Below, piece by piece: positions 1-64,000 of a DNA stretch of 64,000 bases. The DNA comes from Zancudomyces culisetae HAW-14-8 (taxonomy: Eukaryota; Fungi; Kickxellomycota): positions 558,001 through 622,000 of the forward strand of contig JBNJNM010000009.1 of the NCBI GenBank assembly GCA_052426225.1, read 5' to 3'. Within the stretch, counting starts at the first letter, position 1; each line of letters begins with the position of its first letter. The notes under the pieces are model-generated. The model was given only the letters and a program-made list of their open reading frames with translations. It searched no databases and was not told the DNA's origin. Position numbers and translations under genes: made by a program.

Positions 1-54
1 GATACCACCCCTCTAGTAGAACCAGTTAGAATTCATAATAAATTGAATCTAACA
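1..54 (+). repeat. Probable 3' end of an LTR of an element lying upstream of the window (outer member of the tRNA-Ser(TGA) stack)
   Basis: Ends ...CTAACA like other LTR ends here and is followed by AATTC, the same sequence that precedes tRNA-Ser at 13839-13843. Confidence 0.55.
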
Positions 55-517
55 AATTCTGTTATATAGTGGCTAGAGCTACCTCTAGTCATTATATAAT
101 TTTAACTTACCAATTACATATTTATTTCTATATATTAATATTTAGGTTTATCAATTAATATAAGTTAATATTTATTATAGGTTATTTAGTATATTATGTG
201 TTGCCTAGTTTTTTTTAGCCTTCTGGATTTTTTCTACAGCAACATCCTAGATTATTATTAATAATTAGTATAGTTTTAAGTTTAAAATATATTTAGGTTT
301 TAAGTTTAATAGTTGTTTTAAAAAAGTATAAATATGATAGTTATTCAGATAGTTTAAACATCATCAAATAAACACGTAAAATACAAGTTTGGTCTATTTA
401 TTAAAGTTATAGTTAATATAGTGAAAACTTAACAACATTAGTACATAGTATAGTTTTTCTATCAAATAAATATATTTTTTACACAATAGCGAACTGGAAC
501 CTGGAATTCGCTAACAG

Positions 518-535
518 TGGCGTCAGCGACAGGAT
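518..535 (+). promoter_or_regulatory. Primer-binding site of family A, complementary to tRNA-Ser(TGA) 3' end
   Basis: TGGCGTCAGCGACAGGAT is the exact reverse complement of CCA plus the last 15 nt of the tRNA at 13846-13927. Confidence 0.95.
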
Positions 536-570
536 ATCGGAAGTATCCTGATATTTTAGTAACTGAATTA

Positions 571-3500
571 ATGTACAAAATGAATACTCCTACTGTATTT
601 GTTGCAAGTAATGGTTTAGAGCCAGATGAGTGGTTGGAAGAGTTCTGCCTTATGGCTAAGTTAAATAAATGGGATTCAGAGGACTATACCGATCTGGTCA
701 AGCTATACTTGGGCAACAACGAAAAGATGTGGTATAAAAAGAATAAATCATCTTTTACAAGTTGGGAAAGTTTTGCTACATTATTTAAGAAGAAATTTAA
801 ACAAGTAAAACCAAAATCGCAAATCTGGGAACGCCTCCGTTCAATTAAACAAATTGATTTCGATACTATTAAAGAATTCGAACTTGAATTAGTAGCTTTG
901 TTTCAAAGTGCCGAGATATCGGATGAGAAGATCCGTACTGACTGGCTTATTAGTACACTTAAACCAGAGCACAAGAAGATTGTAGAGGAAGAGCAACTGA
1001 GTGAGTGGGATAAATTAATAACAAGGGTGATAACAGAGGAACAATCGTTGCGCACAAACCAAAGGAGAAGCAAGCTATCAGAAGTGGATCCTAAGCAAAA
1101 GGAATACAATCGCAATGCAGCGAGCAAGTCTGGAAAAAACGTTAAAGACTTAGTAAAGGACCAGAAACCTTATGGTCAATTTTTGAAGAAGTTTGATGAG
1201 ATGAGTGTGAATTTGTTAAATAAAGTCGAGGAGGTTGTAGACAAAAAGTTAAAAGAAGCAGAAATAATCAAACAACGTAGTTTCGGACCAAGAAAATTGA
1301 TATGTTATAACTGTCAACAGGAGGGGCATACAAGAAATGATTGTCCCCAGTTAGTCAAAAAACCTAAACCATACGTTCAACCTGAAGATGTGGCTAAGAC
1401 AATTAACTATATTCAAATTTCAGATGATGTAGAACCAATTCAACAAGATATATTTTCCGTCGAAAAGCGTAAATCCACCACTGAACAGGATAACGATGCA
1501 CCTAGAAGAGTTGGAAGACCTCGATTACAAGAACAAGCACAAGTTCGCAATACCAGGGTTGAAAATCAACAAGGTAGTTTAGGGGCAGAAAATATTCAGG
1601 CAACGGTTGGTAGAACGGTAAAAGAGTACGCTAAACCATTTTCGCTGATCGAGGAGCTAGAGAAGATGTCTCTTAAGGTGAATGTATTGCAGCTTTTGGA
1701 CTGTTCGACTACAATGTCTAAAGAATTAATCGAGTATATTAATAAACAAAAATTACCTGAGGTTAACGAACTAGATGTTGAAGAAAAAAGGTTATCAAAC
1801 TGTAAAGCACTAGTTAAGGTGTTTGGGCAGAACCTCTGGGCAGTTGTGGATACTGGCGCAGCATGTTCTGTGGTTTCCTCAAGTTTAATAGAGGAATGGG
1901 ACCTAGAACTAGATACATATAATAAACAAACTATAGTTACTGCAGACGGAAAACGTCATACCACGTTGGGTAAGGTGACTGACATACCATTAAAAATATC
2001 ATCTTTTGTATTTCCAGTAAACCTGTGGGTTATGGAGCGTAAGGAAGATATCTTGATTCTAGGCACAGACTGGTTGCTGGAACATAGAGTTTCGCTTAAC
2101 CTGCGTATCCCAGAACTTCGTTTACCTATTGAAAATGCGGAAATTACAACTAAGTTAGCAATGTTCACAAATAAAAGTGTGTTAAGAGAAGAACAAGAGA
2201 TATATTTATTGTGTAAAGAAGAAACAGTTGGTAAAAATTATAATGAAACTATGGTGTTCAAAAAAGTTATGGAAGAATTCGCTGACATTTTTGTGGATGA
2301 TATTTCTCAATTAACTCAAACAAATGTTATGGAACACAAGATTGATTTAATTGAAGAAAAACCAATAAAGTTACGGCCATATCGAATGCCGCAGAAAACT
2401 CAAGAAGCCGTTAGGCAAGAGTTAAAAGAGATGGAGAAGAGGGGAGTTATTTCACCTTGCATTTCAGAGTGGTGTGCTCCGGTAGTCGTCGTGCACAAGA
2501 AAAACGGCCAGTTAAGGATCTGTGCCGACTATCGTAAACTGAACGCTGTAACCAAAAAAGATTCCTATCCCTTACCCTTAATTGACGATCTGTTTATGTC
2601 TTTATCTGGATCAACTGTGTTTACTTCGCTTGATGCCCTCAGTGGCTTCTGGTAAATTAAAATGTATGAAAACGACAAATGCAAAACTGCCTTTTCAATT
2701 CCAGGCGGAGGTAGCTATCAATATAATGTAATGCCTTTTGGGCTTATAAATAGTCCTGCTACATTTCAACGAGCAACGGAGATTGTTTTAAAGGATGTTT
2801 TATGGAAAAAGGCAGTGGTGTTCGTGGACGACATTATAATTTATTCAAAAGATATCAAACAGCACATAACTGATTTAAGAGAAGTATTTTTATTGTTAAG
2901 AACAAATGGGATACAGTTACATAAACAAAAATGCGTAATAGGTCAAAGAGAGTTAGAGTATCTTGGACACACTATTTCTGAAAAAGGAGTCGGTACTAGC
3001 CCTTCAAAGATTGAGACAATAAAAAAGATACAGCCGCCAACTTGTGTCAAAGAATTACAATCTATATTAGGATTAACAGGATATTATAGAAGGTACATTG
3101 AAGGATATTCAAAAATTACATCACCTTTAAATAAACTCTTACGCAAGGAGACCAAATGGTGTTGGGAATCGATTCATGACGATGCAATAAATATATTAAA
3201 ATAAAAATTGATAACTGCTCCGATACTAGGATTCCCTATTTGGACTGAAGAATTTGTGCTAACTACAGACGCCTCAGTGACTGGAGTAGGCGCTGTACTT
3301 TCACAAGTTGTTAACGGTGAAGAGAGAGTTATTGAATTTGCTAGTCGTACTACCAACAAAGCAGAACAAAACTATTCTATATGTCATCTAGAAGCGTTAG
3401 CAGTTATTTGGAGTGTTAAAAAGTTTAAATATTATCTATGGGGACGATTTAAAATACGCACTGATCATAAATCTTTGTTACAAATATTCAATGGATCCGA

Positions 3501-4957
3501 GCTTACAGGTAGAATTGCCCGTTGGGCAATGATACTTAGAAGCTATGACTACTATATTGAACACTTACCCGGTAAACACAATCCTGCTGATGCCTTGTCT
3601 CGAAATATATTAAATGAAGATCATCCTAAAGCAAATATTGAATTGGATATTTATTCTATGGATATATTAGAATATGTGGATACAGTACAATATCTTACAT
3701 CTATGCAATATCCTACTGGTGGTAATGACAAAATGAGAGAAAAAATTCGCAATAGAGCACGTCGATATTATTTAAAAGATGGGAAGTTATTTAAAAAGGT
3801 AAATAAGATATTTAAAGAGGTTTTGCACGAAAGGAATTTTAAAGAAATTATAACTAATATACACAACGAGGGACATGAAGGTATTGAAAATACGTGGCGT
3901 AGGGTAACCAGTAAATATACAGGAAAAAATTTGTATAAGGATGTTTTAGGGATTGTCAAATCATGTCACATTTGTCAAATTCATAAAGACGGCAAAACAA
4001 AGAAAAATTATCTGGTGCCTATTATTACTTCAAAACCATTTGAAATTTTTGGTATTGATGCAATTGGACCGATTTCACCAATATCGGGAAATGGAAATCG
4101 CTACATTTTAACAGCCGTTGACTATTTTACAAAATGGCCAATCGCCGTGCCTGTTACAAATTTATTGAGTGAAACAATAATAAATTTTATAGTTAACGAA
4201 ATTGTTGCAAATTATGGCGTTCCACAACAAATAATAAGCGACCGCGGTTCAAGTTTTGTTTCAGATAGTACAACAAATGTTTTCGAGTGGTTGGGATTAA
4301 ACCATAGACCTACAACTTCTTATAGGCCACAAAGTAACGGCCAGGTAGTACGATATAACAGAACTTTAATTAATATACTTATTAAACAATGCAAATACGA
4401 TAAAGCAAATTGGGATTCTTATATTTGGAAAACATTGTTAGTGGTAAGGTCATTAAAAAATAAATCGACAGGTTATACGCCTTCTGAGTTGTTATATGGA
4501 GTAAATATTTGTTTACCTTCTACTTGGACTTATAACGGTGAGATTGAAGATGTAGAAGAAAATATTAGTAGTAGAATTAATAGCTTTAAAATAGATTTGC
4601 CTGAGTTAAGAAATCTTGCATTACGAAATTCGATAAAAGCGAATAATATTATGGAAAAACGATACAACGAAGATGTTAGACATTAAATTTCGAATTGGAG
4701 ATACAGTATTGAAGCGAGTCGAAATGGAAAGAAGCAAATTCGAAAGTTATTGGGAAGGCCCCTATACGGTTCAAAGAGTATTCTCAAAAGGAGCTTATAT
4801 TATTAACGATCATCAAGGTAACCGAGAAATAGTAAACGGTGACATGTTAAAAATGTACTTCACAAATAAGAACATGATACCCGAAGTAACAACTACGCTT
4901 AAATCAAAACTAAAAAGGTTTAAAAATAGAGAACGGGATGAGGGCATCCACGCTTAA
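571..4957 (+). pseudogene. Family A single-frame gag-pol, disrupted by stops at 2653-2655 and 3202-3204 and a frameshift near 4680
   Basis: CYNCQQEGHTRNDC zinc knuckle, VDTGA protease, FVDD RT, TDAS RNase H, HHCC/DDE integrase, GPY motif. Confidence 0.93.
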
Positions 4958-5428
4958 GGGAGGAGGTTCTGTTATATAGTGGCTAGAGCTACCTCTAGTC
5001 ATTATATAATTTTAACTTACCAATTACATATTTATTTCTATATATTAATATTTAGGTTTATCAATTAATATAAGTTAATATTTATTATAGGTTATTTAGT
5101 ATATTATGTGTTGCCTAGTTTTTTTTAGCCTTCTGGATTTTTTCTACAGCAACATCCTAGATTATTATTAATAATTAGTATAGTTTTAAGTTTAAAATAT
5201 ATTTAGGTTTTAAGTTTAATAGTTGTTTTAAAAAAGTATAAATATGATAGTTATTCAGATAGTTTAAACATCATCAAATAAACACGTAAAATACAAGTTT
5301 GGTCTATTTATTAAAGTTATAGTTAATATAGTGAAAACTTAACAACATTAGTACATAGTATAGTTTTTCTATCAAATAAATATATTTTTTACACAATAGG
5401 GAACTAGAACCTGGAATTAGCTAAGAAT

Positions 5429-8400
5429 TGTTGCATAATTAATTATATATTATAAAAAATACGAATTGACAAAGTCAATTCTGATAAATTACTATATTAA
5501 AATTAGTGGAAAAATTGGACTCTTTTTTCCCTAACAATTTGGGTTTTTTTAATGAGCCAAGAAATTACAAAACAAAAATTGATAACACAAAAAAATTGAG
5601 ATAACAAAATAGATGGAAAAAAAATAGTTTATATATAAATTTTATTTATAGTTTGGAAGAATAACTTTTAGGATAACAACTTTTTAGCAATAAAAAATAA
5701 AGAATAATAACCAAAATAATAAGCAAGTCTTAATAGTTAGTTAGAGTTTCGAACAAAACAAGTAGATAATTAACTTTTCTATTAAATTTTAAACCAACTA
5801 AATACGAATAACTACGACTACTAGCAGAAAAGGGTCGAAAGTTAACAGTGGTGATCCAGCCAGGACTTGGAGTCCGTTTTATAGCTAAAATATTAAATAA
5901 ACACCTTTAAATCAAACATGACACTAGTTGAAAAGTTTAACTCAGAAATTGACAACCCAGAAGATTGGATTGATTCGTACAGTTTGAGTGCCAGACTCAG
6001 AAATTGGTCTGACGAAGATCTAATAAAATATTTACCTGCACATCTAGGTAACCGTGAAAAGATTTGGTATATTAGGCAAAAGAGTACATTCACCGATTGG
6101 AATTCTGTCGATTCTTCATTCAATAAAAAGTTCATAAATAAAATCAAAGCTCATCAGTCAATCGAGACACTAAAAAGCATTTGTCAGTCAGGTTACAATT
6201 CTGTTGACGAATTTGAGTATGCTTTAGAAATAGCTCTACAAAAATCTGGTATAACAGATGACAAACATAAGGTCAATTGGTTAATCAGTGCATTGAGTCC
6301 AAAATATAAAGCAAGAGTCCTAGAATCAAATTATCAAGAGTGGGATACTATCATAAATGCCATAAATCTGGATATAGATACCCCTAGTTACAATTCTACA
6401 GACATCGCAGAGACAAATTCATCTACATCAAAATCTTACAGACTAACCGGACCTGGCAAACCAATAAAAGAAATGACTGATCAAAAGATTGGTTATGATG
6501 AGATGATATCCAAGATGGAAGAATGGAGTATAAACTTACTTTCAAAAGTCGAAGAGGTTGTTGAAAAGAAAATTGACATTGCTATAAGTAAAAGTATGCA
6601 ACAGCGTTATCAAAGGCCACCGTACTGTTCTATCTGTAGAACAACAGGACACTATAAGAGTCAGTGTACAAAGATTGGAACTACCAAAACAGATGAGGTA
6701 CAAAGTAAAAAAGAAATCAGCACTATTGAGTTACTACCAGTCGATGACACGGATATTGACACTGATGACACGCCAGATAATGATGTTTACTTAGTGCAAA
6801 GGCAAAAAGCTAAATCAAATATCAGTAAGCCATATATAAGTGATAATAAACCAGTTAGAAAGATGAAACCTGTTATTATAAAACCTGAGGCAACTATAAC
6901 AGATAATGTTGTGGACATGGATATGGAAGTTACACCTGAAGTCACTATAGTGAATAAAAAACAGAAAACCATCCAGCGCATTATCGAAAACGTCGAGCCA
7001 TTCAATCTACAATCTGAATTTAACCAGTTTTATCCAAAGATTAGTCTACCTCAGTTAATAGCCGTTTCTCCTACCATAGCAACAGAGTTTAATAGTCTTT
7101 CTAAAAAAATAAAAAAAACAAGAAGTAAATGAAATCAGGATATTACCACAAAAAATCAGCAACTGCCGGGTCATGGTCACGGTATTCAACAAAAACTATT
7201 GGGCTGTTGTTGACTCTGGAGCCGCTTGTTCTGTAACTACACCAAGCATGGTTGAGCAGTGGGGCATAGAACCAGAGGGTTGGCACAGACAAGTGTTGGT
7301 AACAGCTGATGGAACAAAACATCTCACTGAAGGTGTTATGAACAAAGTACCTATAACTATAGGAAATCACTTACTAGAAGCAGAGCTCATAGTTATGAAT
7401 CGCAAAGGAAGTACTTTAATTCTCGGCACAGATTGGTTGTATAGGCACCACGGGATTATAGATCCAAGAAGCAGAGAACTAAAGATACACACACATTCAG
7501 AAATATTAGTTATACCAATGAAAATACTTGCAGAAGATACGACTTACTGGCCACAAGAAACTGAGCTATATTTTATGGTGAAGAGTGAAAATGGTGTTGA
7601 AAGTGATAACAAGCAAATCGAGAATGAAAGGTTTATCAAACTACGAGAGCAATATGCTGATATCTTTGTTGAAGACATAGGGGAGCTTACCCAAACTAAT
7701 CTCACAGAGCATAGTATTGAACTAACAGATCATACACCGATCAAGCAGCGCCCATACAGAATTCCCTATCATATGCAAGAAAAGGTTAGAAATGAGTTAA
7801 TTGAAATGGAGAATAAAGGAATAATTTCACCGTGTTATTCAGAGTGGTGTTCGCCAGTCGTAACAGTTTATAAAAAGAATGGCAGGTTAAGGATATGTGC
7901 AGATTATAGGAAGCTGAACCAGGTAACCAAAAAGGATTGTTATCCGTTACCTACTATAGATGATATATTTATGTCGCTTGCCGGAAGCAAAATATTTACC
8001 AGCTTAGACGCGCTATCTGGGTTTTGGCAAATAAGAATGGCAGCCAAAGACAGATTAAAAACCGCGTTTGCAATCCCTGGAGGCGGTAGCTACTGCTACA
8101 ATGTCATGCCGTTTGGGCTGACAAACAGCCCGGCCTCTTTTCAACGACTTATGGAGAAAGCCCTTTCGCCAGTACTTTGGAAGATCGCAGTCGTTTTTAT
8201 TGACGACATTATTATTTACTCTCAGTCAGTTGAGCAGCATGTGGAGGATTTAAAAAAGGTATTTGAGCTACTTAGACAACATAAAATTCAACTGCATAGT
8301 GATAAGTGTTTATTAGGAATGAATAAATTGTGTTACTTGGGACATACCGTGTCTTCTGAGGGAATTGGTACTACAAATGATAAAATAAAAGCAATTACAG

Positions 8401-10746
8401 AAGCAAAGGTACCTAATAACGTCAAGGAACTACAATCTTTTCTCGGTCTAGTCGGGTATTATCGCAAATTCGTGGACCGTTATGCATTGATTTCCGCGCC
8501 TTTAGTCAAACTACTTAGGAAAGAAAACACTTGGAAATGGTCTATTGAACAAGAAAATGCAGTTAATTTATTAAAACAAAGCCTTTGTACCGCACCCACA
8601 TTAGCTCATCCAAATTGGGATTCAGAGTTTATACTTACCACTGACGCTTCAATTGAAGGCGTTGGTGCTATACTTTCACAATCTTCGGAACTTGGCGAGA
8701 GACCTATTTGTTTTGCTAGTAAAACCACAAACAAGCATGAGAGAAATTACTCTATTACCCATCTCGAGGGTTTAGCTGTAATTTGGGGCGTAAAAAAATT
8801 CAAACATTACCTGTGGGGACGCCATTTCACTATACGTACGGACCATAAAGCTTTACTGAATTTGTTCAATGGAAAAGATATAGCCGGAAGAGTAGCCAGG
8901 TGGGCTATGATTCTTCGAAATTATGACTATACAATTGTCCATTGCAAAGGAAAGTCAAACCCCGCTGATGCCCTATCAAGATTAGAACCTACTACATCGG
9001 TTGAGGAAGTTATAGATGTATTTTCTGTAACAAAAATATCTAACGAAACTATTTTAGAATATTTACTAAATAATAGGTACCCAGAGCAAAGCGACGAAGT
9101 GTCAAAGAAAAAGATTAATTATTTATCTAAAAAATTCAAGCTTATCAACAACAAATTATTCAAATTATGTAAGGAAGTTTGGAAGGAAGTTTTATTAAGA
9201 AATAACATAACTGAAAAGGTTAAAGAGATTCATGACGAGTCTCATCAAGGAATCGAGAATACGTGGAGGAGAATCGCAGAGAAGTATACAGGAAACGATT
9301 TATTTAAAACTGTTAAAAAAGTAGTAAAAGAATGTCTAGTATGTCAGAGATATATTGGAAATCGCAATAGGAACAACGAGCTTCAGCCGATATACGTCCA
9401 CAAACCTTTTGGCATCTTTGGACTAGATGCAGTTGGCCCTATTAGTCCAGTATCTGCTCAAGGAAACCGTTACATTCTCACGGGCATTGACTATTTTACG
9501 CGCTGGCCTGTAGCTGAGGCCGTAGAAAATATAAAATCGGATACTATAATTAACTTTATAATAACTCACATAGTTCAGTACTACGGTACCCCCGATCAAA
9601 TAATCACTGATAGAGGCTCGGGTTTTATCAGCGAAGCAGCAGACACAGTTTATAAGTACCTCGGAATTAAACATACACCATCCACACCGTATCGCCCGCA
9701 GTCAAATGGTCAGGTCGAGCGCCTGAACCAAACCCTAAAAAATACGTTAGCAAGACAATGCAAAGCAGACAAAAACAATTGGGACTCTTACTTATGGAAG
9801 TCGCTACTGGTTATCAGGACAATGAGAAACAGAAGCACAGGCATGAGCCCGGCCGAACTACTATACGGAGTAAAGTTAAGTACGCCTGCGTTATGGTCTC
9901 CGCCGGCCGAAATCAGCGATTTAGATCTCGCCATCCAGGAAAGAATTGCAGCCATAAACACCAGTATACCCGAACTACGAAGCATAGGCTATCAAAAAAG
10001 TGTCAAAGCAAAGCAAAATATGAAGTTAATATATGACCGAAGAGTAAGATTAGTAAATTTCAAAGTTGACGAAATGGTCTTAAAACTGATTGAACACGTT
10101 ACCGACAAGTTTCAGGAGGTATGGGAAGGTCCATACCGAGTGTTGAAAAAACTAAATTTAGGTGCTTACCTGATCGCAGATTCGGATGGAAATCGTGACA
10201 TTGTGAATGGCGATTCACTGAAAAGTTTTTTCCATAGTAATCGAATGGTTCCTGAAGTTACTACACAGCTTAGATCGAAGTTGCAGCGTTTTAAAAACCC
10301 TGTACGTCCAATTTGGGATGGGGGTTCTGTTGCATAATTAATTATATATTATAAAAAATACGAATTGACAAAGTCAATTCTGATAAATTACTATATTAAA
10401 ATTAGTGGAAAAATTGGACTCTTTTTTCCCTAACAATTTGGGTTTTTTTAATGAGCCAAGAAATTACAAAACAAAAATTGATAACACAAAAAAATTGAGA
10501 TAACAAAATAGATGGAAAAAAAATAGTTTATATATAAATTTTATTTATAGTTTGGAAGAATAACTTTTAGGATAACAACTTTTTAGCAATAAAAAATAAA
10601 GAATAATAACCAAAATAATAAGCAAGTCTTAATAGTTAGTTAGAGTTTCGAACAAAACAAGTAGATAATTAACTTTTCTATTAAATTTTAAACCAACTAA
10701 ATACGAATAACTACGACTACTAGCAGAAAAGGGTCGAAAGTTAACA
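5429..10746 (+). mobile_element. Ty3/Gypsy LTR retrotransposon, family B copy 1, full length and young (419-bp LTRs 5429-5847 and 10328-10746)
   Basis: Apparently identical LTRs TGTTGCA...TTAACA; PBS TGGTGATCCAGCCAGGAC 5849-5866 (resembles a tRNA-Arg 3' end, unconfirmed); PPT near 10314-10324; TSD GAAT at 5425-5428 and 10747-10750. Confidence 0.97.
5918..10337 (+). CDS. Family B gag-pol polyprotein, split only by one extra A in the A-run near 7111-7118
   Basis: CSICRTTGHYKSQC knuckle, VDSGA, FIDD, TDAS, HHCC-DDE; copy 2 has one fewer A and is continuous here. Confidence 0.9.
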
Positions 10747-13700: not shown

Positions 13701-13838
13701 GATAAAATAATAAGCAAGTCTTAATAGTTAGTTAGAGTTTCGAACAAAACAAGTAGATAATTAACTTTTCTATTAAATTTTAAACCAACTAAATACGAAT
13801 AACTACGACTACTAGCAGAAAAGGGTCGAAAGTTAACA
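10752..13838 (+). mobile_element. Family B copy 2, internally deleted (5' LTR 10752-11170; RT joined to the distal part of the 3' LTR)
   Basis: Nearly identical to copy 1; junction at AAAATAA 13704-13710; TSD AATT at 10748-10751 and 13839-13842. Confidence 0.93.
11241..13724 (+). pseudogene. Truncated family B gag-PR-RT (no RNase H or integrase)
   Basis: 827-aa ORF matching copy 1 up to ...GTTNDKI, then reading into LTR sequence. Confidence 0.9.
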
Positions 13839-13845: not shown

Positions 13846-13927
13846 GTCAGTGTGTCCGAGCGGTTAAGGAGATAGACTTGAAATCTATTGGGCTATGCCC
13901 GCACAGGTTCAAATCCTGTCGCTGACG
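13846..13927 (+). tRNA. tRNA-Ser(TGA)
   Basis: Acceptor GTCAGTG/CGCTGAC, anticodon arm ATAGA-CT-TGA-AA-TCTAT, long variable arm, GGTTCAAATCC. Confidence 0.97.
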
Positions 13928-13929
13928 TT

Positions 13930-14000
13930 GCGTAGATGGTTTAGTGGTATAATTGCCGCCTGCCACGCGGCAGACCCGGGTTCGATTCCCGGTCTACGCA
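13930..14000 (+). tRNA. tRNA-Gly(GCC)
   Basis: Acceptor GCGTAGA/TCTACGC, anticodon arm GCCGC-CT-GCC-AC-GCGGC, GGTTCGATTCC. Confidence 0.97.
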
Positions 14001-14005
14001 TTGTA

Positions 14006-16440: not shown

Positions 16441-16512
16441 AGGAGCGACCGGGAATTGAACCCGGGGCCATTCGATCTGCAATCGAATGCTCTGCCGCTG
16501 AGCTATCACTCC
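16441..16512 (-). tRNA. tRNA-Cys(GCA)
   Basis: Acceptor GGAGTGA/TCGCTCC, discriminator T, anticodon arm TTCGA-TT-GCA-GA-TCGAA. Confidence 0.96.
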
Positions 16513-16514
16513 AT

Positions 16515-16816: not shown

Positions 16817-16821
16817 TTATG

Positions 16822-17274: not shown

Positions 17275-17278
17275 TGTG

Positions 17279-48578: not shown

Positions 48579-48610
48579 CCGGCAAGGTATTACTGGGGCT
48601 AACCGTATAA

Positions 48611-51600: not shown

Positions 51601-52724
51601 CAACAGATCTAAGACATCAAGGAAGAAAAAGCAAGGACTTCTCCAGCCATTACCTGCTCCTGATTCGCCATGGAAATCTATCTCAATGGATTTCATCACA
51701 GAGTTACCCCCTTCAAAAGGGAACACTACAATTTTAGTGGTTGTAGATCGGTTCAGTAAAATGAGCCATTTTATACCACTAAAGAAGCTCCCTTTTTCTG
51801 TAGAAACCGCCGAGCTCATCTTGAATAATATCATTAGACTCTACGGTTTGCCTGAAGAGATCATCTCTGACCGTGGCCCCCAGTTTGCATCAAAGTTTTG
51901 GAATGCTCTTTTTAACACTTTAGGTGTAAAAATCAAGCTCTCAACAGCTTTCCACCCCGAAACTGATGGACAGACCGAAAGAGTCAATCAGACTCTGGAA
52001 CAGGATCTCCGTTGTTTCTTGTCATACCAACAAGATAATTGGACAGACCTTCTTCCATTGGCAGAATTTGCCTACAACAATTCTACTCACGAATCTACTG
52101 GATCATCCCCGTTCTTCATTAACTACGGATTTAACCCACGCTTTGATCCACCCTTAATCAAAAACCATGTTCTGCCTTCAGTTGAGGAAAGGATCAATCA
52201 AATCCACCAGATTTGGAAAGAAACTAATAAGCAAATCACTCTCGCTTCATCAGCCTTCAAGAAATCTGCCTACAGGAAAAGAAGAAAAAATCCTGAATAT
52301 ACTATAGGTGAAAAAGTTTGGCTTCTAACTAAAAAATATTCAGACTACAAGGCCTAGTAAAAAACTTGAATATAAGAAAATTGGACCATTCAAAATTAAA
52401 GAAAAGCTTAGTGATTTAGTTTACAAACTTGACCTCCCCGCCTCTATGAAAATTCATCCAGTATTTCATGTTTCACTATTGGATAAATACATACCGCTTA
52501 TGAATTCTGTTCTTCCCGAACCTCCTGAACCAATAATCGTCAATAATGAACTAGAATACGAAATTGAAGAAATCCTGGACTCAAAAATCTTAAGAAATAA
52601 AAAATACTATTTAGTACATTGGAAAGGATACGACATCACCGAAAGAACTTGGGAGCCAATTGAAAACATATCCGCTGAGCGATTGCTGAAAGAATTTCAT
52701 GAAAAATATCCTAACAAAATTTAA
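48611..52724 (+). pseudogene. Chromovirus E pol; open to about 52340, then an A-run frameshift before the GPF and chromodomain tail
   Basis: LIDSGA, YLDD, KTDAS, HHCC, DDE; chromodomain within 52446-52724. Confidence 0.92.
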
Positions 52725-55700
52725 GAAGTTTTGAAAAATTTAACTCAAAAAAAATAAAAAAAACTAACAAAAACAAAATCAAATTAAAATCAAAATCAAA
52801 ATTAAACAAAATTTACCCATAACCGAAAAAACTTTTGAAAAAAAATTTCAAAATTTTCAAAATTTTTAAAAAAGTATAAATTGTCAGAATGACATATCTC
52901 CACACTTTCCCCACATAAGTAAGATTATATTTGTCTCACAATATTATGGAGTTAATTTCAGACACATAGTATTGGTTATAAATAACCACATATAAATTAT
53001 ATAAGATACTACACCATTAATTGTTATAGTAAATTTCATATATAACCCTAGCTAAAAGATTTTATCGCAACTCAGCGATAAAATCATATTTCATAGTCCA
53101 TAGTAATTTAAGCTTAAATTTTAAAGTTACCTTAATATATTCTTGACATAAATATGCCAACTTCCCCCTGACAAAATGAAAAATTAAAATCGAACCAACT
53201 CGCTTAAAAATAAAGAGAGTTTGCTGTAAGATCGTCAGGGAGAAGACGAATCAGCTGGTAAGAATGTGGGGTTATAGGCGGCCAATGTGCGCAAGCGCAA
53301 GCGAGCACCGGAGCCTCCCACCTCTTCTAAATTTCCATTAGGAAGCCGGTATTGATTCGCGAATTACCGAATGGTATGGCTCTCAACGTTAGCTTCGATA
53401 AATAAATTCAAGTCGAATATCCCTTTATTCGATTGTTATATATTTTTATATATAACAAAATATATATATAAAAAAAAAAATAAATAAAAAAAATATATAT
53501 ATATATTAATTTAATACAAAGTTTCTCTACTTGACTGGTAGTTTAAAAGAAAACTTTTAATACTTTTTTGGGATGGGGATAATGTTATAGCCAATAATAT
53601 TACTTCTTAATACCCATAATTAATCTTCATATTTTATCTTATATTTAATCATTTCGTTTATGCTTCGTTGTAATTATCTAAGAATTACAACTTGTTTATT
53701 CAATAAATCTCGTTCTGTGACACTGCGTGCTCGGTGATCAACCTTGGGCTACTTGAAAGACTAGGACTACAAGTGGAACAAAAAAGTAAGCAGATATTGG
53801 TGACAGCAGACGGAGGAACTCACGAGACAGCAGGAAAAGTGTTTAGAGTGCCAATATCTATAGCAGGTTATAAATTTCCAGTTGATCTGCTGGTGATAGA
53901 AAGAAAGGATGACTTTTTGGTTTTAGGAACGGATTGGTTTGTTGAGCACCAAGTGAAGTTGGACATGTCTACAAAGGAACTGACATTACCCAAGGAACAA
54001 GCAGATGTCATCATTTCAATATCCACCAAGTTACCTGACGTACCACAAGGCGAGCTTACTGAGTTGTTCATTATTTTCAAGGAAAACATAGATATCAACA
54101 TGACTGACCAATTTGATGACCCCAGAATACAAGAAGTGAAAGAAAGAAACAAAGACTAATTCATTAGTGAGATAGAGGAATTAAAACAAACCGACTTGGT
54201 TGAACACACGATTACCTTGACAGAAGAGAGACCAATCAAGCAAAAGCCCTATCGCATTCTCCACCATCTCAGGGAAAAAGTGATGACAGAATTAGAGGTT
54301 ATGGCAGCAAATGGAGTGATAACGCCATGTATGTCAGAATGGTGTTCTCCTGTAGTCGCAGTCTGGAAAAAAGACGGGAAACTCAGAATCTGTGCAGACT
54401 ACAGGAAGTTGAATAGTGTGACGAAGAAAGATTGCTATCCTCTGCCAACCATCGAGGACATATTTATGACCCTTTCAGGATCAATAATATTCAGCAGCCT
54501 CGATGCGAGAAGCGGGTTTTGGCAAATCCGAATGGCTGCAGCAGATAGAGATAAAACAGCCTTCTCAATCCCTGGAAGTGGTAGCTATTGTTACAACGTC
54601 ATGCCATTCGGTTTGACTAATAGTCCAGCTTCCTTCCAGAGATTGATGGAGAAAGCCCTAGCACGTGTGTTATGGAAAACAGCCGTAGTTTTCATTGATG
54701 ATGTGATAGTTTTCTCCAAAACAATTGACCAACACTTGGAGGATTTACAAGAAGTGTTTTGCCTACTTAGAACTAGCCAGATACAGCTCCATAATGATAA
54801 GTGTAAACTAGGAATGAAAAGGCTAGAATATCTTGGACACGTCATTTCTAGTCAAGGGATAGGTACAAGCCCCATTAAAATCCAAGCAGTTATGAAGACT
54901 AAAAACCCAACAAGTGTCAAAGAACTTCAGGCATTTCTCGGACTTACAGGATATTACCGTAAGTTTGTAGAAGGTTATGCAACGATAACATCTCCTCTAC
55001 TGAAGTTATTGAAAAAAGGAAGTGTGTGGAATTGGTCACAGGAATGCGAAGAGGCCGTAAAAAAGCTGAAGGATATGCTCTGTAGTGCCCCCACCTTATC
55101 ACATCCTAACTGGGATAAGGAGTTCATTTTGACTACAGATGCCAGTGTGAATGGTATTGGAGCCATTTTATCCCAATTATTTGAAGACGGGGAGAAACCG
55201 ATTTCGTACATCAGCAGGATCACCAACCAGCATGAAAGAAACTATTCTGTATCACATCTAGAAGGACTTGCTGTCATATGGGCAGTAAACAAATTTAAGT
55301 ACTATTTGTACGGAAAACATTTTACTATAAAGACTGACCATAAGTCTTTGATGAGCTGTTCAATAGTAAAGATATTACGGGAAGAATTGCGCGATGGGCT
55401 ATGATTCTCAGAAATTATAATTATACTATTGTCCATATAGCAGGTAAGACAAATCCGGCAGATGCACTATCAAGACTCGAAAATGTAGTAGAAGCAAAGG
55501 AAGAAGAACCCATAGACATCTTTACGTTGGATTATCTATATTTCAGCGCGATAAAAGAATATTTACAAAACTTCAATTATCCATCGGGTGCCGATGAAGC
55601 TTTTCGTAAAAAGTTAAGAAATAAAGCTAGAAAATACACATTGAGAGGAGAAACGCTATACAAAAGGTCTAAAGGAACTTTAAAAGAAGTATTACATGAG

Positions 55701-57162
55701 CGTAATATACATGATATAGTAAAGACAGTGCATGAGGAATCACACCATGGGATCGAAAATACGTGGAGGACAGTAACACAAAGATATTCAGGAGAAGGAT
55801 TATATGAGGTGGTAAAGAACGTTGTGATCGAGTGTTTGAAATGCCAATACTATAAGGGAAACAGAGTCAAGAGGAGTAAACTAACTCCTATAGTTGGACG
55901 AAGACCATTTGAAATTTTTGGGTTGGACGCAGTTGGACCTATAAACCCTGTTTCTAAATCGGGAAATAGATTTATCTTGACGGGAATTGATTATCTTACA
56001 AAATGGCCCGTTGCACAAGCAGTAAGTAATATCAGATCAGAAACTGTGGTTAATTTTATTATTACTAAAATAGTTCAAGAGTTCGGAGTTCCAGCACAAA
56101 TAATAACTGATAGAGGAGCAGGATTCTTAGGAGAGGTGGCACAAAACGTGTATGAGTTTCTACAGATAAAACACACGCCGACGACTTCATACAGGCCACA
56201 ATCTAATGGCCAAGTAGAACGTTTCAACCAGACCCTGAAAAACGTTCTGATTAAACAATGCATGAAAGACAAAGACAACTGGGATGCATATTTATGGAAG
56301 TCACTTCTTGCAATACGTACCATGAGAAACCGTGCTACAAAATATAGCCCAGCCGAACTTCTCTATGGCGTAAGACTCGCTACACCATCTATCTGGACTC
56401 CGAAGCATGAAACTGACAATTGGGAAATTGCAATTCGTGAAAGAATAGAGAGCATGAATACAGAAATTCCTGAAATGAGAAACAACGGATTAGAGAATAG
56501 TATACAGGCCAAAGAAAGTGAGAAGCTTGCCTATAACAAAAATATAGTAGAGTCACGATTTAAAATTGGCGATATGGTAATGAAAGCGAATGAGCAACAG
56601 TTGAGCAAACTGGAACGGATATGGGAAGGCTCTTATCAGGTAGAGAGGGTACTCAATTATGGAACCTACGTCATAGCTGATAACGAAGGAAACCGTGACC
56701 TTGTGCACGGCGATATGTTAAAGAAGTTTCACCACAGTCAATACATGGTACCTGAGGTTTCAAATACACTCAAGTCTAAGTTAAGAAGATTCAGAGAGAA
56801 GGTAAGCCCAATCTGGGGCCGGGGTTCTGTCGTATAGTAATACGATTAGAACTCTTAATGCATTGAGATTTCTAATCTCAATATTTTATTGTAGTTAAAT
56901 TATAGTATAGTTATCTTTATTTTTAGATTGGACTTTTTTCCTTCCGTGGTTTTGTCTATGGATTTATTACTTAGTCTTTTGAATAATAATTATCGTAAAG
57001 TTTTTGGGGTTAAAGCAAACGCCCACTTGAAATTTAAATAAAACAAGCTTAACAGAATATTAAAATAGATATAAGTTTTAATAAGTATAAATACCAAACA
57101 TACAGTAAGTTACTTATATAGTATAGTTAAGTAGTAAAAATAAACATTTTAGTTAACCGAGA

Positions 57163-57416
57163 TGTTGTATGCCTACAATAGGTGAAACATTTCCATTGGT
57201 TAATTGTGTTTTATAATTTTTTGTTAGATTTTTAATAGATTTTATTGTATAAAATTGATATTTTTGTTTAACTAAATAAATGTCCTCTTTTGCAAAATCC
57301 AAAGTACTATATAATAATTCGCAGCATATAGTAAAAGGTAAGTAAAATGACCCGTCCCGTGTGTTATTTGGTGTAAAAAACACTAAATGGGACGTTAAAC
57401 ATGGCAACACACAACA
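57163..57416. repeat. Solo LTR K, 8 nt upstream of tRNA-Ser(AGA)
   Basis: TGTTGT...ACAACA ends; perfect TSD GAGA (57159-57162, 57417-57420). Confidence 0.88.
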
Positions 57417-57424
57417 GAGACACA

Positions 57425-57506
57425 GTCGGTGTGTCCGAGTGGTTAAGGAGACAGACTAGAAATCTGTTGGGCTCTGCCCGCACAGGTTCAAATCCTGTCG
57501 CCGACG
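57425..57506 (+). tRNA. tRNA-Ser(AGA)
   Basis: Acceptor GTCGGTG/CGCCGAC, anticodon arm ACAGA-CT-AGA-AA-TCTGT, variable arm, TTTT at 57513-57516. Confidence 0.97.
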
Positions 57507-58149: not shown

Positions 58150-58920
58150 TGTCATAATTATTTGTTTATGTAATAATTAATATATATTATAGACTATTGT
58201 TGTCAGTTAATGATAAGATTTAGTGAAAAAGTAAGGGTAATGATAATTAAAAATTGCTAAAATGCATAAACATATAATATCCTAAACCATTAACCCATGA
58301 TTACTATTCAATATTTACCTATTATTATTCTAGAAGAATTTTGGATTTTCTGGAGTGACTCATTAAGTACTATTGTTCCCCAGAAATTGCGTAATAATTA
58401 ACTAATATTATGTAATAATACATATTCGGTAGGGATCTAGAATGTATGGCTTTAGTTCATGACAGTATCACCCTCCTAATAACGAACTCCGAGCGGCTTA
58501 GGTTTGTTAGGGTTTAACTGGTGGAATTTTTTAACAAGTCTTTGTGCATTCGCTAAGTTGTCTGCTGGTTCCCATGTACGTGCGCTTGGATCATACCCTT
58601 TCCAGTCTACTAGGTATTCTAGTTTTTTATTCCGTAGCCTGCTGTCTAGCACTTTGTTCACTTCGTATTCAATCTGGTTCTCGACGACTATGGGTAACGG
58701 TGGATCTTGAGTTCTTAGAAAATTTTATTTTTTTTAATCGGCTCTAGTAAAGATACGTGTAAAACGGGGTGTGTCCTCATTGATTTAGGTAAGTCTAACT
58801 TTTAAGCCAGTTTTTCAATTCTCTTTAGAATTCTAAACGGTCCAATCTTTGTGTAATCCAATATGCTGTTTGGTCGGTGGTCTTAATGAACTTACTATTT
58901 AACCAAACAGTTGATACAAT
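58150..58920 (-). mobile_element. Chromovirus 3' remnant (integrase tail and chromodomain; probable LTR 58150-58464)
   Basis: IGPF, THPVLHVS and KVLDSR...YLVDWKGY...TWEP fragments; GGAGGG then TGTCATG on the minus strand. Confidence 0.8.
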
Positions 58921-59383: not shown

Positions 59384-60989
59384 CAGTGACTCATAAATTT
59401 GTTCAAATGTTTTTGACGTTTAATAAAAAATTATTATATCTCACTAATACAATATCGTATCACCTTAATTTTACAAATATTATACATCCATATACCATGT
59501 ATTACCTATGAAAGTATCAGATTACTATAACCAGCCAATCAACTGTAGTTATACTTTTTGTAGAAATATTTTATTTGAACAATTTTTTGGATTAATTTTA
59601 AATAATTATCAATTTTGGTGTTTTCTTTTACATTATGATAAATATCATTTACATATTTTATAGGAACTAAAAATAATTATAATTATCTACACAATGCATT
59701 ATATAGTTAAAATATAATTTTTTGATCAATTTACATACGATGAAAAAACTCAATATGAAAAAATTTAAAGTGTAATAATCTGGAGGATAATGAATTCATA
59801 TAGCCTAATTGCATCAAAACTATCTAAATATATAGGGACAATATCTAACATAAAATGAAAGTATTGACCATCAATAAAAACATTATCACATGGCAGCCCA
59901 AATAAATTATCAAAAGCAAATAAGCGATTAATAATTTGTAAAATTACGTCTGGACAATTTGATACAGCGACAGACACTACAAAATTTCTCAAGGATAATG
60001 GCCTTGTATCTGTGGTTCCTCAAACGGTGCGGAATAGCTTGAATAAATATGGTTTAAGTGCAAAACCTAAGGTCAAAAAACCTATGCTAAAATTAGGTCA
60101 TATTAAACAACGACTTGCATTTGCTATAAATTATCAGTATTGGACTGTAGAAGACTGCAAACGTGTGATATGGTCTGACGAGACTAAAATTAACAGATTT
60201 GGGTCAGATGGGCGCATGTGGTGCTGGAAAAAACAAGGTAGCCAGTTAAAACCGAACCATGTTAAAAAAACTATAAAACATGGTGGAGGTTCAATCATGA
60301 TATGAAGATGCATGACTTCAGAAGGCCCAGGATATCTTACTAAAATTGATTGTGGACTTAATGCAGAATTGTACTGTGATATTCTTGAAGACGAACAGGT
60401 AAAACCAATGGAGTGGTACGACTTAGACAGGGAAAGTACAACTTTTCAGCATGATAACGATCCAAAACACACCGCGATAATCACAAAAGCCTGGTTGCAA
60501 ATTAACTCGGTTTAGGTGCTTGACTGGCCAGCGCAGTCACCTGACCTAAATCCAATTGAACATCTATGGGTCAGTTTGAAAAGACGGCTGTCAGATCACG
60601 AAAAAGCACCAAAAGGGATGAACGAACTTTGGGACCGCGTACAAGACGAGTGGAATAAGATAACACGATGAGAGTATGTCATTTATCAGTAGCTCGCCTG
60701 CACAAATTATGCAGTAATGAAAGCCAGGGGTGGATATATCAAATATTAGTTTAATTAAGTTTATATAATTTTTTATTATTAGCAAAAAAATTGTTCAAAT
60801 ATAATATTTATACAAAAAGTATAACTACAGCTGATCGGTGGTTCAAGTAATCTAAAAATACGATAGGTGATACATGGTATAAAGATGTATTATATTTTTA
60901 AATTTTAATTTTATACGATATAGTATTCGTGAGATATATAAATTTTATAATATTTATCAAATACTTTTAAACAAATTTTTGAGACACTG
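59384..60989 (+). mobile_element. Tc1-family (DD34E) transposon with ~200-bp imperfect TIRs and a degenerate transposase
   Basis: TA-CAGTG...CACTG-TA ends; WSDETK, KHGGGS, FQHDNDPKH...WPAQSPDLNPIE with 34 residues between D and E. Confidence 0.93.
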
Positions 60990-61956: not shown

Positions 61957-62028
61957 TAGCACCACCTAGTTTCGATCTAGGGACCTCAAGGTTATGAGCC
62001 TTGCGCGCTTCCTCTGCGCTATGATGCT
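61957..62028 (-). tRNA. Initiator tRNA-Met(CAT)
   Basis: A1:T72 pair, GATCGAAA T-loop typical of eukaryotic initiators, anticodon arm CAAGG-CT-CAT-AA-CCTTG. Confidence 0.95.
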
Positions 62029-62029
62029 T

Positions 62030-62101
62030 TTCCGCAACGGGGAATCGAACCCCGGCCACGACGGTGAGAGCGTCGGATCCTAGCCACTAGACCATTGCGG
62101 A
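62030..62101 (-). tRNA. tRNA-Glu(CTC)
   Basis: Acceptor TCCGCAA/TTGCGGA, anticodon arm CGACG-CT-CTC-AC-CGTCG. Confidence 0.96.
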
Positions 62102-62108: not shown

Positions 62109-62954
62109 TGTCGTAATAATCATAATTCGTGTAACCATGATTATTAAGTTCATCATGTGTCATACCAGTTCGGGTATGACCACTTGATGAAGATGCACCA
62201 CTACCCCGTAGTGTGATGTGCATATTAGGGTGCTCGGGTGAGCTGTTTCCCCTATACAATGTCGGTGAGATACTGCTCACGGACATTGGTTCTGGGCTCC
62301 TACGGATTTGGAGTTGACGGACACTTTCTGTCAACTCCCCAAGAGTCCGAGGACTTAAAACCCCAGTCTCTTGGTCCATGCTACTAGCCGTGCTCAGGCT
62401 GGAGCTAGTTTCAGAATCCCTCTTGGATTTGCTCTTGGTATAAAAGAAATAGTTCATGATGTTTGGTTATTTATTATATGTATATACTTTTAAAGTTTGT
62501 TTTATTGAGTTTATTAACTATACTATTTAATCCGTAAAGTAGGACATGGATAAAGTTACCTAATAGACTACTCTATCAATTATATATATGATTAAAAACT
62601 TAAATGCTAACCTAGTTTTTCAATATAATAAATTAACTATAAACTATTATTATGCTGTTAAGTATGCTAATAGTTTTGTTCCATAATTGCAGCATACGTG
62701 CAATTAAGATTATGTGTGGGAACACATAATCATTAAAATTATTTGATGTTCAGTATGAAAACATATTTCGTACTAGAATCATCATTATTGAATGGACTCA
62801 GCATGTAGAATTTATTTCATGCTGAGTCGAAATTAATTTGAACAAATATTTAAACGACAATAAAAATTATAAAAATTGGCATTCCGCAATGAGTGTACAA
62901 CAAAATTTCTTGTACACTATTCGATTTTGCATTACAATTCGGCTTATTGCGACA
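62109..62954. repeat. Solo LTR L (846 bp), 7 nt upstream of tRNA-Glu
   Basis: TGTCGTAATAA...TTATTGCGACA (10/11 inverted match); perfect TSD AGTT (62105-62108, 62955-62958). Confidence 0.87.
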
Positions 62955-62958
62955 AGTT

Positions 62959-63355
62959 TGATATAGCTTTCTAAATATATGTTTAAAAATAGACTATTAG
63001 CTAAACTATTATTTAATACTTATTAATTATAACAAAATCTTTAAATATTGTTTAGATAATACTGTGTTAATTTTAATAAAAGATTGGTGTCGTTACCATT
63101 TTGGATACTAAATCCTTCTTTTTATATTGAAATGACTATAAACATAAATGTTGTATAAAAGTATTCTAAAGTATAAAATATTCTCGATATTAGAAAAAGT
63201 CTAAAAACTAATTCGAGATTCCTAGTAATAAAAACTTATATTAAATATATAATTAAACGTTATCTAGAAAGTAATTAATAAAGTTTTAATAATTTGATAA
63301 TAATTGTTGTATTAACTCAATTCTAGATGAGGTGTACTTCTCTAAAAATATATCA
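62959..63355. repeat. Solo LTR M
   Basis: TGATATA...TATATCA ends; flanks AGTT/TGTT. Confidence 0.72.
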
Positions 63356-63360
63356 TGTTT

Positions 63361-64000
63361 TGTTAGCGAAACACAGGTTTACATCACAATATTGTTTATT
63401 ATATATTTATTTTGATAGATATACTATACTAAGTACTATGTTTAATATTGATTTCACTATAGTAACTATGCTAAAACAAATAGACCAAATTTAAATAAAC
63501 TATATTTATTTGATGATGTAATACTAAATGATTATCTAGCCATATTTATACATTTTAAAAATGACTATTACAATATTCTGAAATAATTTTATACAAATTA
63601 ATAAAATAATCCTATAAAATATATATTAAATTGAACTAGTGTGTTGCTGTAGAAAAAATCCAGAATGATAAAAAAAACTAGGCAACACATAATATAATAA
63701 ATAACCTATACTAAATAATATCTTATATTAAATGATAAACTAAATATTAATATAAAAGTATATGAATAACTGGTAAGTTAAAATTATATAATGACTAGAG
63801 GTAGCTCTAGCCACTATATAACAGTACGCCCTCCCTTAAGCGTGGATGCCCTCATCCCGCTCTCGATTTTTAAACCATTTTAATTTTGATTTGAGTGTTG
63901 TAGTCACTTCGGGGATCATGTTTGTACTTGAAATATACTTCTTCAGCATGTCGCCATTGACCAACTCTCGATTTCCGTTGAGGTCAAATATTATATAAGC
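63361..64000 (-). mobile_element. Family A-related element: 3' LTR (63361-63823) and integrase C-terminus, continuing beyond the window
   Basis: Reverse-complement similarity to 4800-5426; encodes NMIPEVTTTLKSKLKWFKNRERDEGIHA. Confidence 0.92.

Follow-up and report, generated by a model that had tools for sequence, protein, structure and literature searches.

Why does an LTR retrotransposon end within a few nucleotides of each tRNA locus in a stretch of fungal DNA, with further elements queued behind it? The question is posed by the 64-kb stretch that was analysed here as a whole (hereafter, the window). It is an island of transposons in the genome of a fungus of the Harpellales, almost certainly Zancudomyces culisetae, to which a protein matches at 100% identity, and ORF and domain scans found no host protein genes in it. 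A transposon that targets the space upstream of tRNA genes is the textbook example of safe-site choice, and the answer that we regard as very probable is of this kind: Ty3/gypsy elements of one clade that lacks a chromodomain integrate upstream of tRNA genes, at a distance set by a ruler that starts at the tRNA, and their stacks are ordered by age.

tRNA genes and element stacks in the window

The tRNA genes of the window, on whose coordinates ARAGORN and Rfam agree, are as follows.

13846-13927, plus strand: tRNA-Ser(TGA)
13929-14001, plus strand: tRNA-Gly(GCC), paired with tRNA-Ser(TGA) across a 1-nt spacer
16515-16586, minus strand: tRNA-Pro(TGG), paired with tRNA-Cys(GCA)
16441-16512, minus strand: tRNA-Cys(GCA)
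57425-57506, plus strand: tRNA-Ser(AGA)
62030-62101, minus strand: tRNA-Glu(CTC), paired with tRNA-Met(CAT)
61957-62028, minus strand: tRNA-Met(CAT)

Four stacks of elements stand upstream of these genes. The LTR that closes stack 1 ends at 13838, 7 nt (AATTCAA) from tRNA-Ser(TGA); that of stack 2 ends at 16595, 8 nt (ATAACAAC) from tRNA-Pro; that of stack 3 at 57416, 8 nt (GAGACACA) from tRNA-Ser(AGA); and that of stack 4 at 62109, 7 nt (AACTACA) from tRNA-Glu. All four are real LTR ends, which terminate in ..ACA and have copies with the same boundary elsewhere in the genome. An earlier note on this DNA had given these distances as 7, 8, 8 and 7 nt, and direct reading returned the same gaps. 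Its counts of 3-4, 7, 7-8 and 3 insertions were also about right (at least 4, 7, 8-9 and at least 4 units in stacks 1 to 4), as was its figure of around a dozen LTR families. The members of the stacks and the neighbouring repeats, with target duplications (TSDs) where both sides match, are listed below.

1-54, plus strand: stack 1, 3' LTR end (..CTAACA) of an older element whose beginning lies outside the window, followed by the junction AATTC
60-5426, plus strand: stack 1, full-length element A (LTRs 60-516 and 4970-5426)
5429-10746, plus strand: stack 1, full-length element B1, gag and pol ORFs intact (TSD GAAT/GAAT)
10752-13838, plus strand: stack 1, element B2 of the same family as B1, with an internal deletion, running from RT into the 3' LTR (TSD AATT/AATT)
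16595-16816, 16822-17274, 17279-17499, 17504-17938, 17941-18394 and 18397-18759, minus strand: stack 2, six abutting solo LTRs (TSD of the first, ATAA/ATAA)
18762-22853, minus strand: stack 2, seventh member (3' LTR 18764-19359; IN, RH, RT and PR ORFs), its 5' portion truncated at the start of the chromovirus
22854-28713, plus strand: chromovirus copy of the non-tRNA clade, with 140-bp LTRs that are 95% identical
33748-35279, minus strand: fragments between two facing stacks
35256-38591, plus strand: stack 3, oldest readable member, with degenerate RT-RH-IN and a 3' LTR end ..ATTATAACA
38594-38915 and 38920-40085, plus strand: stack 3, two solo LTRs, the second with an insert of about 0.5 kb (39053-39549)
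40090-45181, plus strand: stack 3, full-length element, LTRs 96.2% identical
45186-45410, plus strand: stack 3, solo LTR of the 222-bp family
to 45660, plus strand: stack 3, unclassified unit after the preceding solo LTR, terminating in ..CTACAACA
45664-57158, plus strand: stack 3, full-length element, LTRs 98.5% identical, host to a nested chromovirus
47446-53722: the nested chromovirus, with the 5-bp TSD CTGCG
57163-57416, plus strand: stack 3, solo LTR of 254 bp (TSD GAGA/GAGA), ending 8 nt short of tRNA-Ser(AGA)
58476-58661: chromodomain fragment
62109-62954, minus strand: stack 4, solo LTR of 846 bp (TSD AACT/AACT)
62959-63144 and 63149-63355, minus strand: stack 4, two units
63361-63823, minus strand: stack 4, 3' LTR of an A-like element whose interior continues to 64000 and runs off the window

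Stack 3 thus extends from about 35.3 kb to 57416. Neighbouring LTRs within the window stacks are separated by junctions of only 2-5 nt (in the solo LTRs of stack 2, read on the minus strand, CATAA, CACA, CACT, CG and CG), and these junctions have the character of 4-bp target duplications that were reused or that overlap. A TRIM was considered for the 222-bp LTR pair at 16595 and 17279 and rejected, since what separates the two is itself an LTR with junctions of its own. Not every retrotransposon of the window belongs to the targeted clade: the two chromoviruses, at 22854-28713 and 47446-53722, stand outside the targeted series.

Distance and orientation across the genome

About 35 of the genome's tRNA loci were sampled, drawing on 20 loci chosen by tRNA score alone and on 30 short loci. 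An LTR end was found 3-14 nt upstream in 19 of the 20 sampled tRNA loci outside the window, and in 23 of 24 when the four window loci are counted with them; the arrangement that had been described from the window is confirmed and is genome-wide. With 11 further loci added, the gap is 7-8 nt at 26 of 34 loci and 6-9 nt at 30 of 34, so that the 6-9 nt proposed earlier describes most loci and falls short of the full range, which is 3-14 nt. At 13 of the sampled loci, the tRNA is faced by the 3' LTR of a full-length element with LTRs 98.5-100% identical. Judged by the sampled loci and by one family followed throughout the genome (family B, below), most copies are confined to a narrow interval upstream of tRNA genes.

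The same arrangement is present in an independent draft assembly (GCA_001969505.1), with an LTR end 7 nt from a tRNA-Val. In Smittium culicis, a Pro-Val-Glu-Met tRNA cluster is preceded on its own strand by a full element, and the LTR-tRNA junction is masked by a run of N. No tRNA was found beside the element in the relatives outside Harpellales (Calcarisporiella P0014, metagenome P0005 and Logan P0016). As to other Pol III genes, the region upstream of the single U6 gene contains a TATA box and no transposon insertion, and the 5S genes are located in the rDNA repeats.

Orientation is nearly as regular as distance. Every tRNA-clade stack member of the window whose orientation can be read has its 3' LTR toward the tRNA, and across the genome 27 of 28 tRNA-proximal elements of known orientation point in the direction of the gene (13 of 13 in family B). 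The pattern is strongly polar, and the strict polarity that the earlier note had claimed does not extend to family X, which is consistently reversed (5' LTR toward the tRNA at 3 of 3 loci), or to one element at locus L017 that also has its 5' LTR toward the tRNA. Nor is such polarity, of which that note knew no description, without precedent: a fixed orientation has already been published for Tj1 of Schizosaccharomyces japonicus, whose insertions lie 5-11 bp before the 5' end of the mature tRNA and invariably follow the direction of the gene (PMC4600332). Tj1 resembles the present elements in being Ty3/gypsy, in its short upstream distance and in its fixed direction, and families related to it cluster with tRNA genes (PMC4600332). 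The differences are that its TSD is 5 bp rather than 4 bp and that it is one tested family in an ascomycete, whereas at least 12 families in a zoopagomycote are involved here, occupying nearly every sampled tRNA gene in stacks of up to 8-9 units and including one reversed family.

Element make-up, clades and the putative tether

The targeted elements are Ty3/gypsy (Metaviridae) LTR retrotransposons: they have direct LTRs with TG..CA ends (pairs 96-100% identical), the domain order PR-RT-RH-IN in Pfam scans, a polypurine tract before the 3' LTR, and a PBS of 18-19 nt complementary to the host tRNA-Arg(ACG), tRNA-Ser(TGA) or tRNA-Pro(TGG). Element A, for example, has LTRs that are 99.3% identical, encodes gag-PR and RH-IN, and carries a PBS complementary to tRNA-Ser(TGA); element B1 has identical LTRs (100%) and a PBS complementary to tRNA-Arg(ACG). 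Targeting involves 12 or more autonomous families and at least one non-autonomous family that encodes only gag-PR. Intact ORFs of 1430-1630 aa and identical LTRs in related families suggest that a dozen or more of these families are apparently active. An exact-protein look-up with the window's pol returned no match.

In a tree built without Ty3, Tj1 or DGLT-A proteins, the tRNA-adjacent families and Smittium culicis form one clade (SH-aLRT 98-99), and the chromoviruses form a separate clade with a support of 100. The second clade carries a chromodomain (L011 has Chromo and SH3_Tf2-1), sits within other transposons, off tRNA starts, and is not tRNA-targeted. In the tRNA-clade integrases, Pfam scans returned no match to the Chromo domain. 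A hidden chromodomain of the Ty3 type was considered and ruled out, given that only a disordered tail of about 35 residues lies beyond the SH3-like barrel. This split is paralleled in dictyostelid amoebae, where DGLT-A, a chromodomain-less Ty3/gypsy element found 13-33 bp upstream of tRNA genes at low copy and in mostly degenerate form, occurs beside the differently distributed, chromodomain-bearing Skipper; unlike here, deep stacks are not reported for DGLT-A (PMC5006619, PMC6101501).

The best-understood comparison is Ty3 of Saccharomyces cerevisiae, another Ty3/gypsy element, which integrates a few bp from the Pol III start site of tRNA genes and whose vestigial chromodomain and CTD hold Brf1 and TBP (7Q5B; 10.1101/2021.07.27.453949). 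Its integrase shares the fold of the present one (Foldseek E 3e-17). The two differ in that the vestigial chromodomain that follows the CTD in Ty3 is absent from the tRNA clade, and in that wild-type Ty3 inserts about 15 bp from the mature end, with a 5-bp TSD and in both orientations. By analogy with Ty3, the insertion site would correspond to the Pol III start site, and we infer a tether between the integrase and the Pol III pre-initiation complex (TFIIIB and/or TFIIIC) on the tRNA gene. On the side of the integrase, the candidate for this contact is its conserved, disordered and basic C-terminal tail.

Targeting could also be real and follow a cue other than TFIIIB, which we consider somewhat unlikely. 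Such a cue might be TFIIIC, a subunit of Pol III, or some property of the DNA or chromatin at active tRNA genes, and the fixed polarity would then stem, with the same reserve, from a contact that is asymmetric or from selection acting on tRNA expression. Ty1 reportedly targets its sites via the Pol III subunit AC40. An integrase that lacks the domain by which Ty3 contacts Brf1 and has only a tail of about 35 aa in its place is consistent with such a cue, as are the 4-bp rather than 5-bp TSD and the opposite polarity of family X at all three of its loci, which points to an asymmetry encoded by the element. The nearest outgroups, moreover, are not tRNA-adjacent, which suggests an independent origin. 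Against this, TFIIIB is positioned just upstream of the gene, and the insertion site coincides with that region, which is used by Ty3 and probably by Tj1.

Reuse of the site and age order

Returning to integration by a tRNA-measured ruler, the clearest evidence comes from the target duplications. A 4-bp TSD is intact in 13 of 15 full-length copies and is also present in several solo LTRs; the full-length copies without matching TSDs are L008, 40090-45181 and 45664-57158. Because the target sequences vary between loci, no DNA motif is shared at the target. At L018, the TSD GCGA was carved from the end of the preceding LTR, whose last CA was left beside the tRNA, and the TSD of B1 takes in the last 2 nt of element A. 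Such split LTR ends show that the tRNA is the point from which the insertion site is gauged, and that the proximal copies are the younger ones.

Family B was traced through the whole genome, where it has 30 LTR copies, 13 of which are 5' LTRs. None of the 17 non-5' copies examined lies outside a tRNA stack: 13 adjoin 13 different same-strand tRNA genes at a gap of 6-12 nt, and in the other four, displaced from the tRNA by a later LTR, 3-5 nt intervene before that LTR begins. Identity to the reference is 94-100% among the displaced copies (median 98%) and 97-100% among the tRNA-adjacent ones, with 11 of 13 at 100%. Together with the split LTR ends, these identities bear out the proposal of the earlier note that new insertions displace older ones into age-ordered arrays.

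Mechanistically, a staggered 4-bp cut falls mostly at about -8 to -4 from the first base of the mature tRNA. Each new copy lands in the same few bases, at times clipping the end of the previous LTR. Earlier insertions are pushed upstream, with the youngest beside the tRNA, and LTR-LTR recombination converts many members to solo LTRs.

Transposons are known to find a safe haven in front of tRNA genes, and it is conceivable that integration is random or loosely regional and that selection spares only the copies in this harmless space, as the lack of host protein genes in the window might suggest. We consider this very improbable, since selection alone cannot yield a mode of 7-8 nt at 26 of 34 loci, the confinement of 17 of 17 non-5' family B LTRs to tRNA stacks with 11 of the 13 adjacent copies at 100% identity, or the reuse of the same four bases by successive insertions, and since the chromovirus clade of the same genome survives inside other transposons. 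That blocks of tRNA plus LTR were copied by segmental duplication, gene conversion or repeat mis-assembly, rather than hit by independent insertions, is hardly credible: a similar LTR pair does precede the tRNA in L017 and at 57071-57424, and short native flanks such as GCCAATT are common to tRNA families, but gaps and TSDs vary by locus, the two flanks of single elements carry matching TSDs, family B stands at 13 different tRNA genes, and the same structure recurs in the independent draft assembly and in a contig of another genus.

Insertion targeted to the front of tRNA genes is a habit already known from yeasts and amoebae, and the present case is a deep further example. To our knowledge, the mechanism is understood for Ty3 only, and a fixed orientation has been seen for Tj1 only. 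The polar, nucleotide-precise families described here, which lack the Ty3 chromodomain and include one reversed family, form a natural panel in which to look for what reads the position and direction of a Pol III gene, and their stacks supply an internal relative dating of insertions. A further question that they pose is what keeps a tRNA gene active when everything upstream of it is LTR. An element-encoded direction, with family X opposite to most, would mean that the intasome meets the Pol III machinery in an asymmetric contact. It is possible, though we would place it short of an even chance, that a chromodomain-less clade specific to Harpellales acquired Pol III targeting on its own and that the direction is set by the element through such a contact, perhaps via the integrase tail. 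If true, every tRNA gene would carry a chronological archive of transposon activity, written at a site that is reused base for base.

Retrotransposon stacks at the tRNA loci of the window

Seven tRNA genes, on which ARAGORN and Rfam agree, occur in the four tRNA loci of the window, three of which are pairs with spacers of 1–2 nt. The earlier note had described LTR stacks (abutting LTR units) just upstream of all four loci with a uniform polarity, and both held within the window: gaps of 7, 8, 8 and 7 nt separate the nearest LTR ends (13838, 16595, 57416 and 62109) from the first tRNA at each locus, unit-to-unit junctions are 2–5 nt, and every orientation-readable member of the tRNA clade (i.e., the Ty3/gypsy families adjoining tRNA genes) turns its 3′ LTR toward the tRNA. 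These are true LTR ends: all four terminate in ..ACA, and many other genomic sites hold copies with identical boundaries.

Features of the window
54: older LTR end, stack 1
60–5426: element A, stack 1, LTRs 99.3% identical
5429–10746: element B1, stack 1, LTRs 100% identical
10752–13838: element B2, stack 1, internal deletion
16595–18759: six solo LTRs, stack 2, then a 5′-truncated element to 22853
About 35.3 kb to 57416: stack 3, 8–9 units, with two full-length elements (LTRs 96.2% and 98.5% identical)
62109 to window end: stack 4, at least four units
13846–14001, 16441–16586, 61957–62101: tight tRNA pairs
14189–15260, 28710–29988, 60012–60515: Tc1/mariner copies, between and inside stacks
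31009–31764: non-LTR endonuclease, likewise

All long ORFs are transposon-derived, mostly Ty3/gypsy gag, PR, RT, RNase H and IN, together with a Tc1/mariner transposase and the non-LTR endonuclease. A 1054-aa pol ORF is 100% identical to its best protein match, a Z. culisetae Ty3-G Gag-Pol entry, with Z. culisetae and Smittium culicis supplying the next-best matches. No gene for a host protein was recognised in the 64 kb, and the window is a transposon and tRNA island; the Tj clusters of S. japonicus are centromeric. Two of the Tc1/mariner copies are 89% alike and oppositely oriented.

Tight tRNA pairs or clusters with spacers of 1–6 nt are frequent, both in the window and at other loci (L002, L008, L010, L013, L014, L016, L020 and L021:6383–6673), among them Ser-Gly, Pro-Cys, Glu-Met, Ala-Lys and Thr-Thr, and S. 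culicis has a Pro-Val-Glu-Met cluster. Such groups are presumably polycistronic Pol III units with one common, transposon-occupied upstream region.

Extent across the genome

The assembly (27.1 Mb, 25 contigs) was scanned with the Rfam tRNA model, and 20 loci were picked by tRNA score alone, each with 9.3 kb upstream. An LTR end lies 3–14 nt before the first tRNA in 19 of these, the sole empty locus being one tRNA-Met locus; Ty3/gypsy coding sequence is found upstream in 17, and 13 have a full-length element with LTRs 98.5–100% identical and its 3′ LTR against the tRNA. In a census of family B (that of B1 and B2), 30 of the 39 genomic LTR copies were examined with 1.5-kb flanks: 13 are 5′ LTRs followed by a PBS, 13 precede as many different same-strand tRNA genes at 6–12 nt, four precede 3–5 nt and then the start of another LTR, and none of the 30 lies elsewhere. 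The whole-genome picture draws on a sample of about 35 tRNA loci, and in 34 the LTR–tRNA gap is 7–8 nt (26 loci) or at least within 6–9 nt (30 loci), with a retained flank of 75% A+C and no fixed motif.

The stacks are also present in an independent draft assembly of Z. culisetae, where 7 nt separate tRNA-Val from an LTR end, and an S. culicis contig carries a full element just upstream of the same-strand Pro-Val-Glu-Met cluster, the junction itself being a run of N. From the sampled loci, the family B census and the independent assemblies, copies lying away from tRNA genes or randomly oriented are not the majority, and stacking at tRNA genes is confirmed as real and far beyond chance. The only U6 snRNA gene (L054, C21:985538–988639) carries no retrotransposon upstream; its TATA box lies near −30.

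Order of insertion and polarity

The target duplication (TSD) of the tRNA clade is 4 bp, and overlapping TSDs in stack 1 and at two other loci (L018 and L050) bear out the proposal that newer insertions displace older ones, giving an age order with the youngest at the tRNA. In stack 1, removing B2 with one AATT, then B1 with one GAAT, restores ...GCTAAGA/ATTCAA/tRNA, and thus A inserted with the TSD ATTC, which also flanks its 5′ end. The next cut, by B1, fell at GAAT and took in the two terminal bases of A's LTR; B2 then cut at AATT, one base further in. In L018, the newer element's TSD (GCGA) was cut out of the older LTR's end, and the last CA of that LTR is stranded beside the tRNA; in L050, insertion of family B (TSD TCAC), one base along, displaced the reversed-polarity family X (TSD ATCA). 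These junctions show that the cut is set by distance from the tRNA rather than by sequence, and that the tRNA-proximal element is the later insertion. Among 15 full-length copies that were read directly, 13 have matching TSDs. In three full-length copies the TSDs do not match, perhaps because neighbouring elements have recombined.

Coding sequence, PBS or family membership gives the orientation of 28 tRNA-proximal elements, and 27 of them direct the 3′ LTR toward the tRNA. The strict polarity claimed earlier therefore stands for these and for all readable window members, but not for family X or for a second reversed element, one step back in L017. The exception among the 28 is family X in L004, which carries gag, pol and PBS on the opposite strand, its 5′ LTR lying 8 nt from tRNA-Met; the same LTR end faces the tRNA in L050, and in L010 it is directed as are its neighbours' 3′ ends, so that this polarity (5′ LTR/PBS side to the tRNA) is kept at three loci. 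Polarity is thus strong and looks family-specific, though not universal; it may be set either by the integration complex or by selection. The short LTR of the reversed L017 element (L017:8860–9034) is a long, nearly perfect inverted repeat.

Family X LTRs
L004:8893–9292
L050 (C12:1870888–1871287)
L010:2285–2684

The targeting clade and known systems

Elements of the tRNA clade are bounded by TG..CA and contain a polypurine tract; their PBS, one base past the LTR, is complementary over 18–19 nt to host tRNA-Arg(ACG), tRNA-Ser(TGA) or tRNA-Pro(TGG). In several families a single ORF of 1430–1630 aa is intact. A family with 762-bp LTRs is non-autonomous, with only an 840-aa gag-PR ORF and no RT or IN; its LTR-internal-LTR-internal-LTR tandem (L009:2736–9297) lies 3 nt from tRNA-Thr (insertion at −3), with a TSD, ACTG, that takes in the first base of the tRNA.

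In an RT-RH-IN tree, all tRNA-adjacent families (44–70% identical to the window pol), two S. culicis elements and one further relative form one clade (SH-aLRT 98–99); two metagenome/Logan elements group within it, and a Calcarisporiella element falls just outside. No tRNA gene adjoins the Calcarisporiella (P0014), metagenome (P0005) or Logan (P0016) relative, the P0016 contigs reaching only ~70–260 bp past the gene. A second Ty3/gypsy clade, of chromoviruses, is separate (SH-aLRT 100), with LTRs of 140–412 bp and no tRNA-type PBS; its members lie within other transposons, at a distance from tRNA starts.

Second-clade members
Window 22854–28713
Window 47446–53722: nested copy, 5-bp TSD
L004:990–6701
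L011:2145–6950: carries SH3_Tf2-1 and a chromodomain

After its catalytic core, the tRNA-clade integrase, which shares its fold with the integrases of PFV and Ty3, has a long helix, an SH3-like barrel and a conserved basic tail of ~35 residues, predicted to be disordered. Ty3 grips TFIIIB via its CTD and a vestigial chromodomain (7Q5B; 10.1101/2021.07.27.453949), whereas no chromodomain, vestigial or otherwise, was found in the tRNA-clade integrase. The Calcarisporiella relative, which has no adjoining tRNA gene, has a diverged C-terminal tail. The tail is proposed as a candidate for targeting, and only as such.

Ty3 inserts ~15 bp from the mature tRNA end in both orientations, with a 5-bp TSD (7Q5B; 10.1101/2021.07.27.453949), and DGLT-A inserts 13–33 bp upstream of tRNA genes (PMC5006619, PMC6101501). 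The closest match is Tj1 of S. japonicus, a species in which ten families of Ty3/gypsy elements are clustered with tRNA genes: Tj1 insertions lie 5–11 bp from the mature end, all in the gene's direction (PMC4600332), so that short distance and fixed direction are common to both. The suggestion that such polarity was undescribed was therefore mistaken. The literature search turned up no paper on targeted transposon insertion in Harpellales or Zoopagomycota. New relative to the literature compared are the number of families sharing tRNA targeting, the near saturation of tRNA genes in the sampled loci, the stack depth and base-for-base site reuse, the 4-bp TSD, a targeting clade without a chromodomain, and the reversed-polarity family. 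With polarity corrected, and with the Pol III start site as a putative target, the core reading, repeated Ty3/gypsy insertion upstream of tRNA genes, is upheld; the Z. culisetae stacks are a very rich form of Pol III-directed Ty3/gypsy integration, in which, by analogy, the Pol III machinery would serve as the tether.
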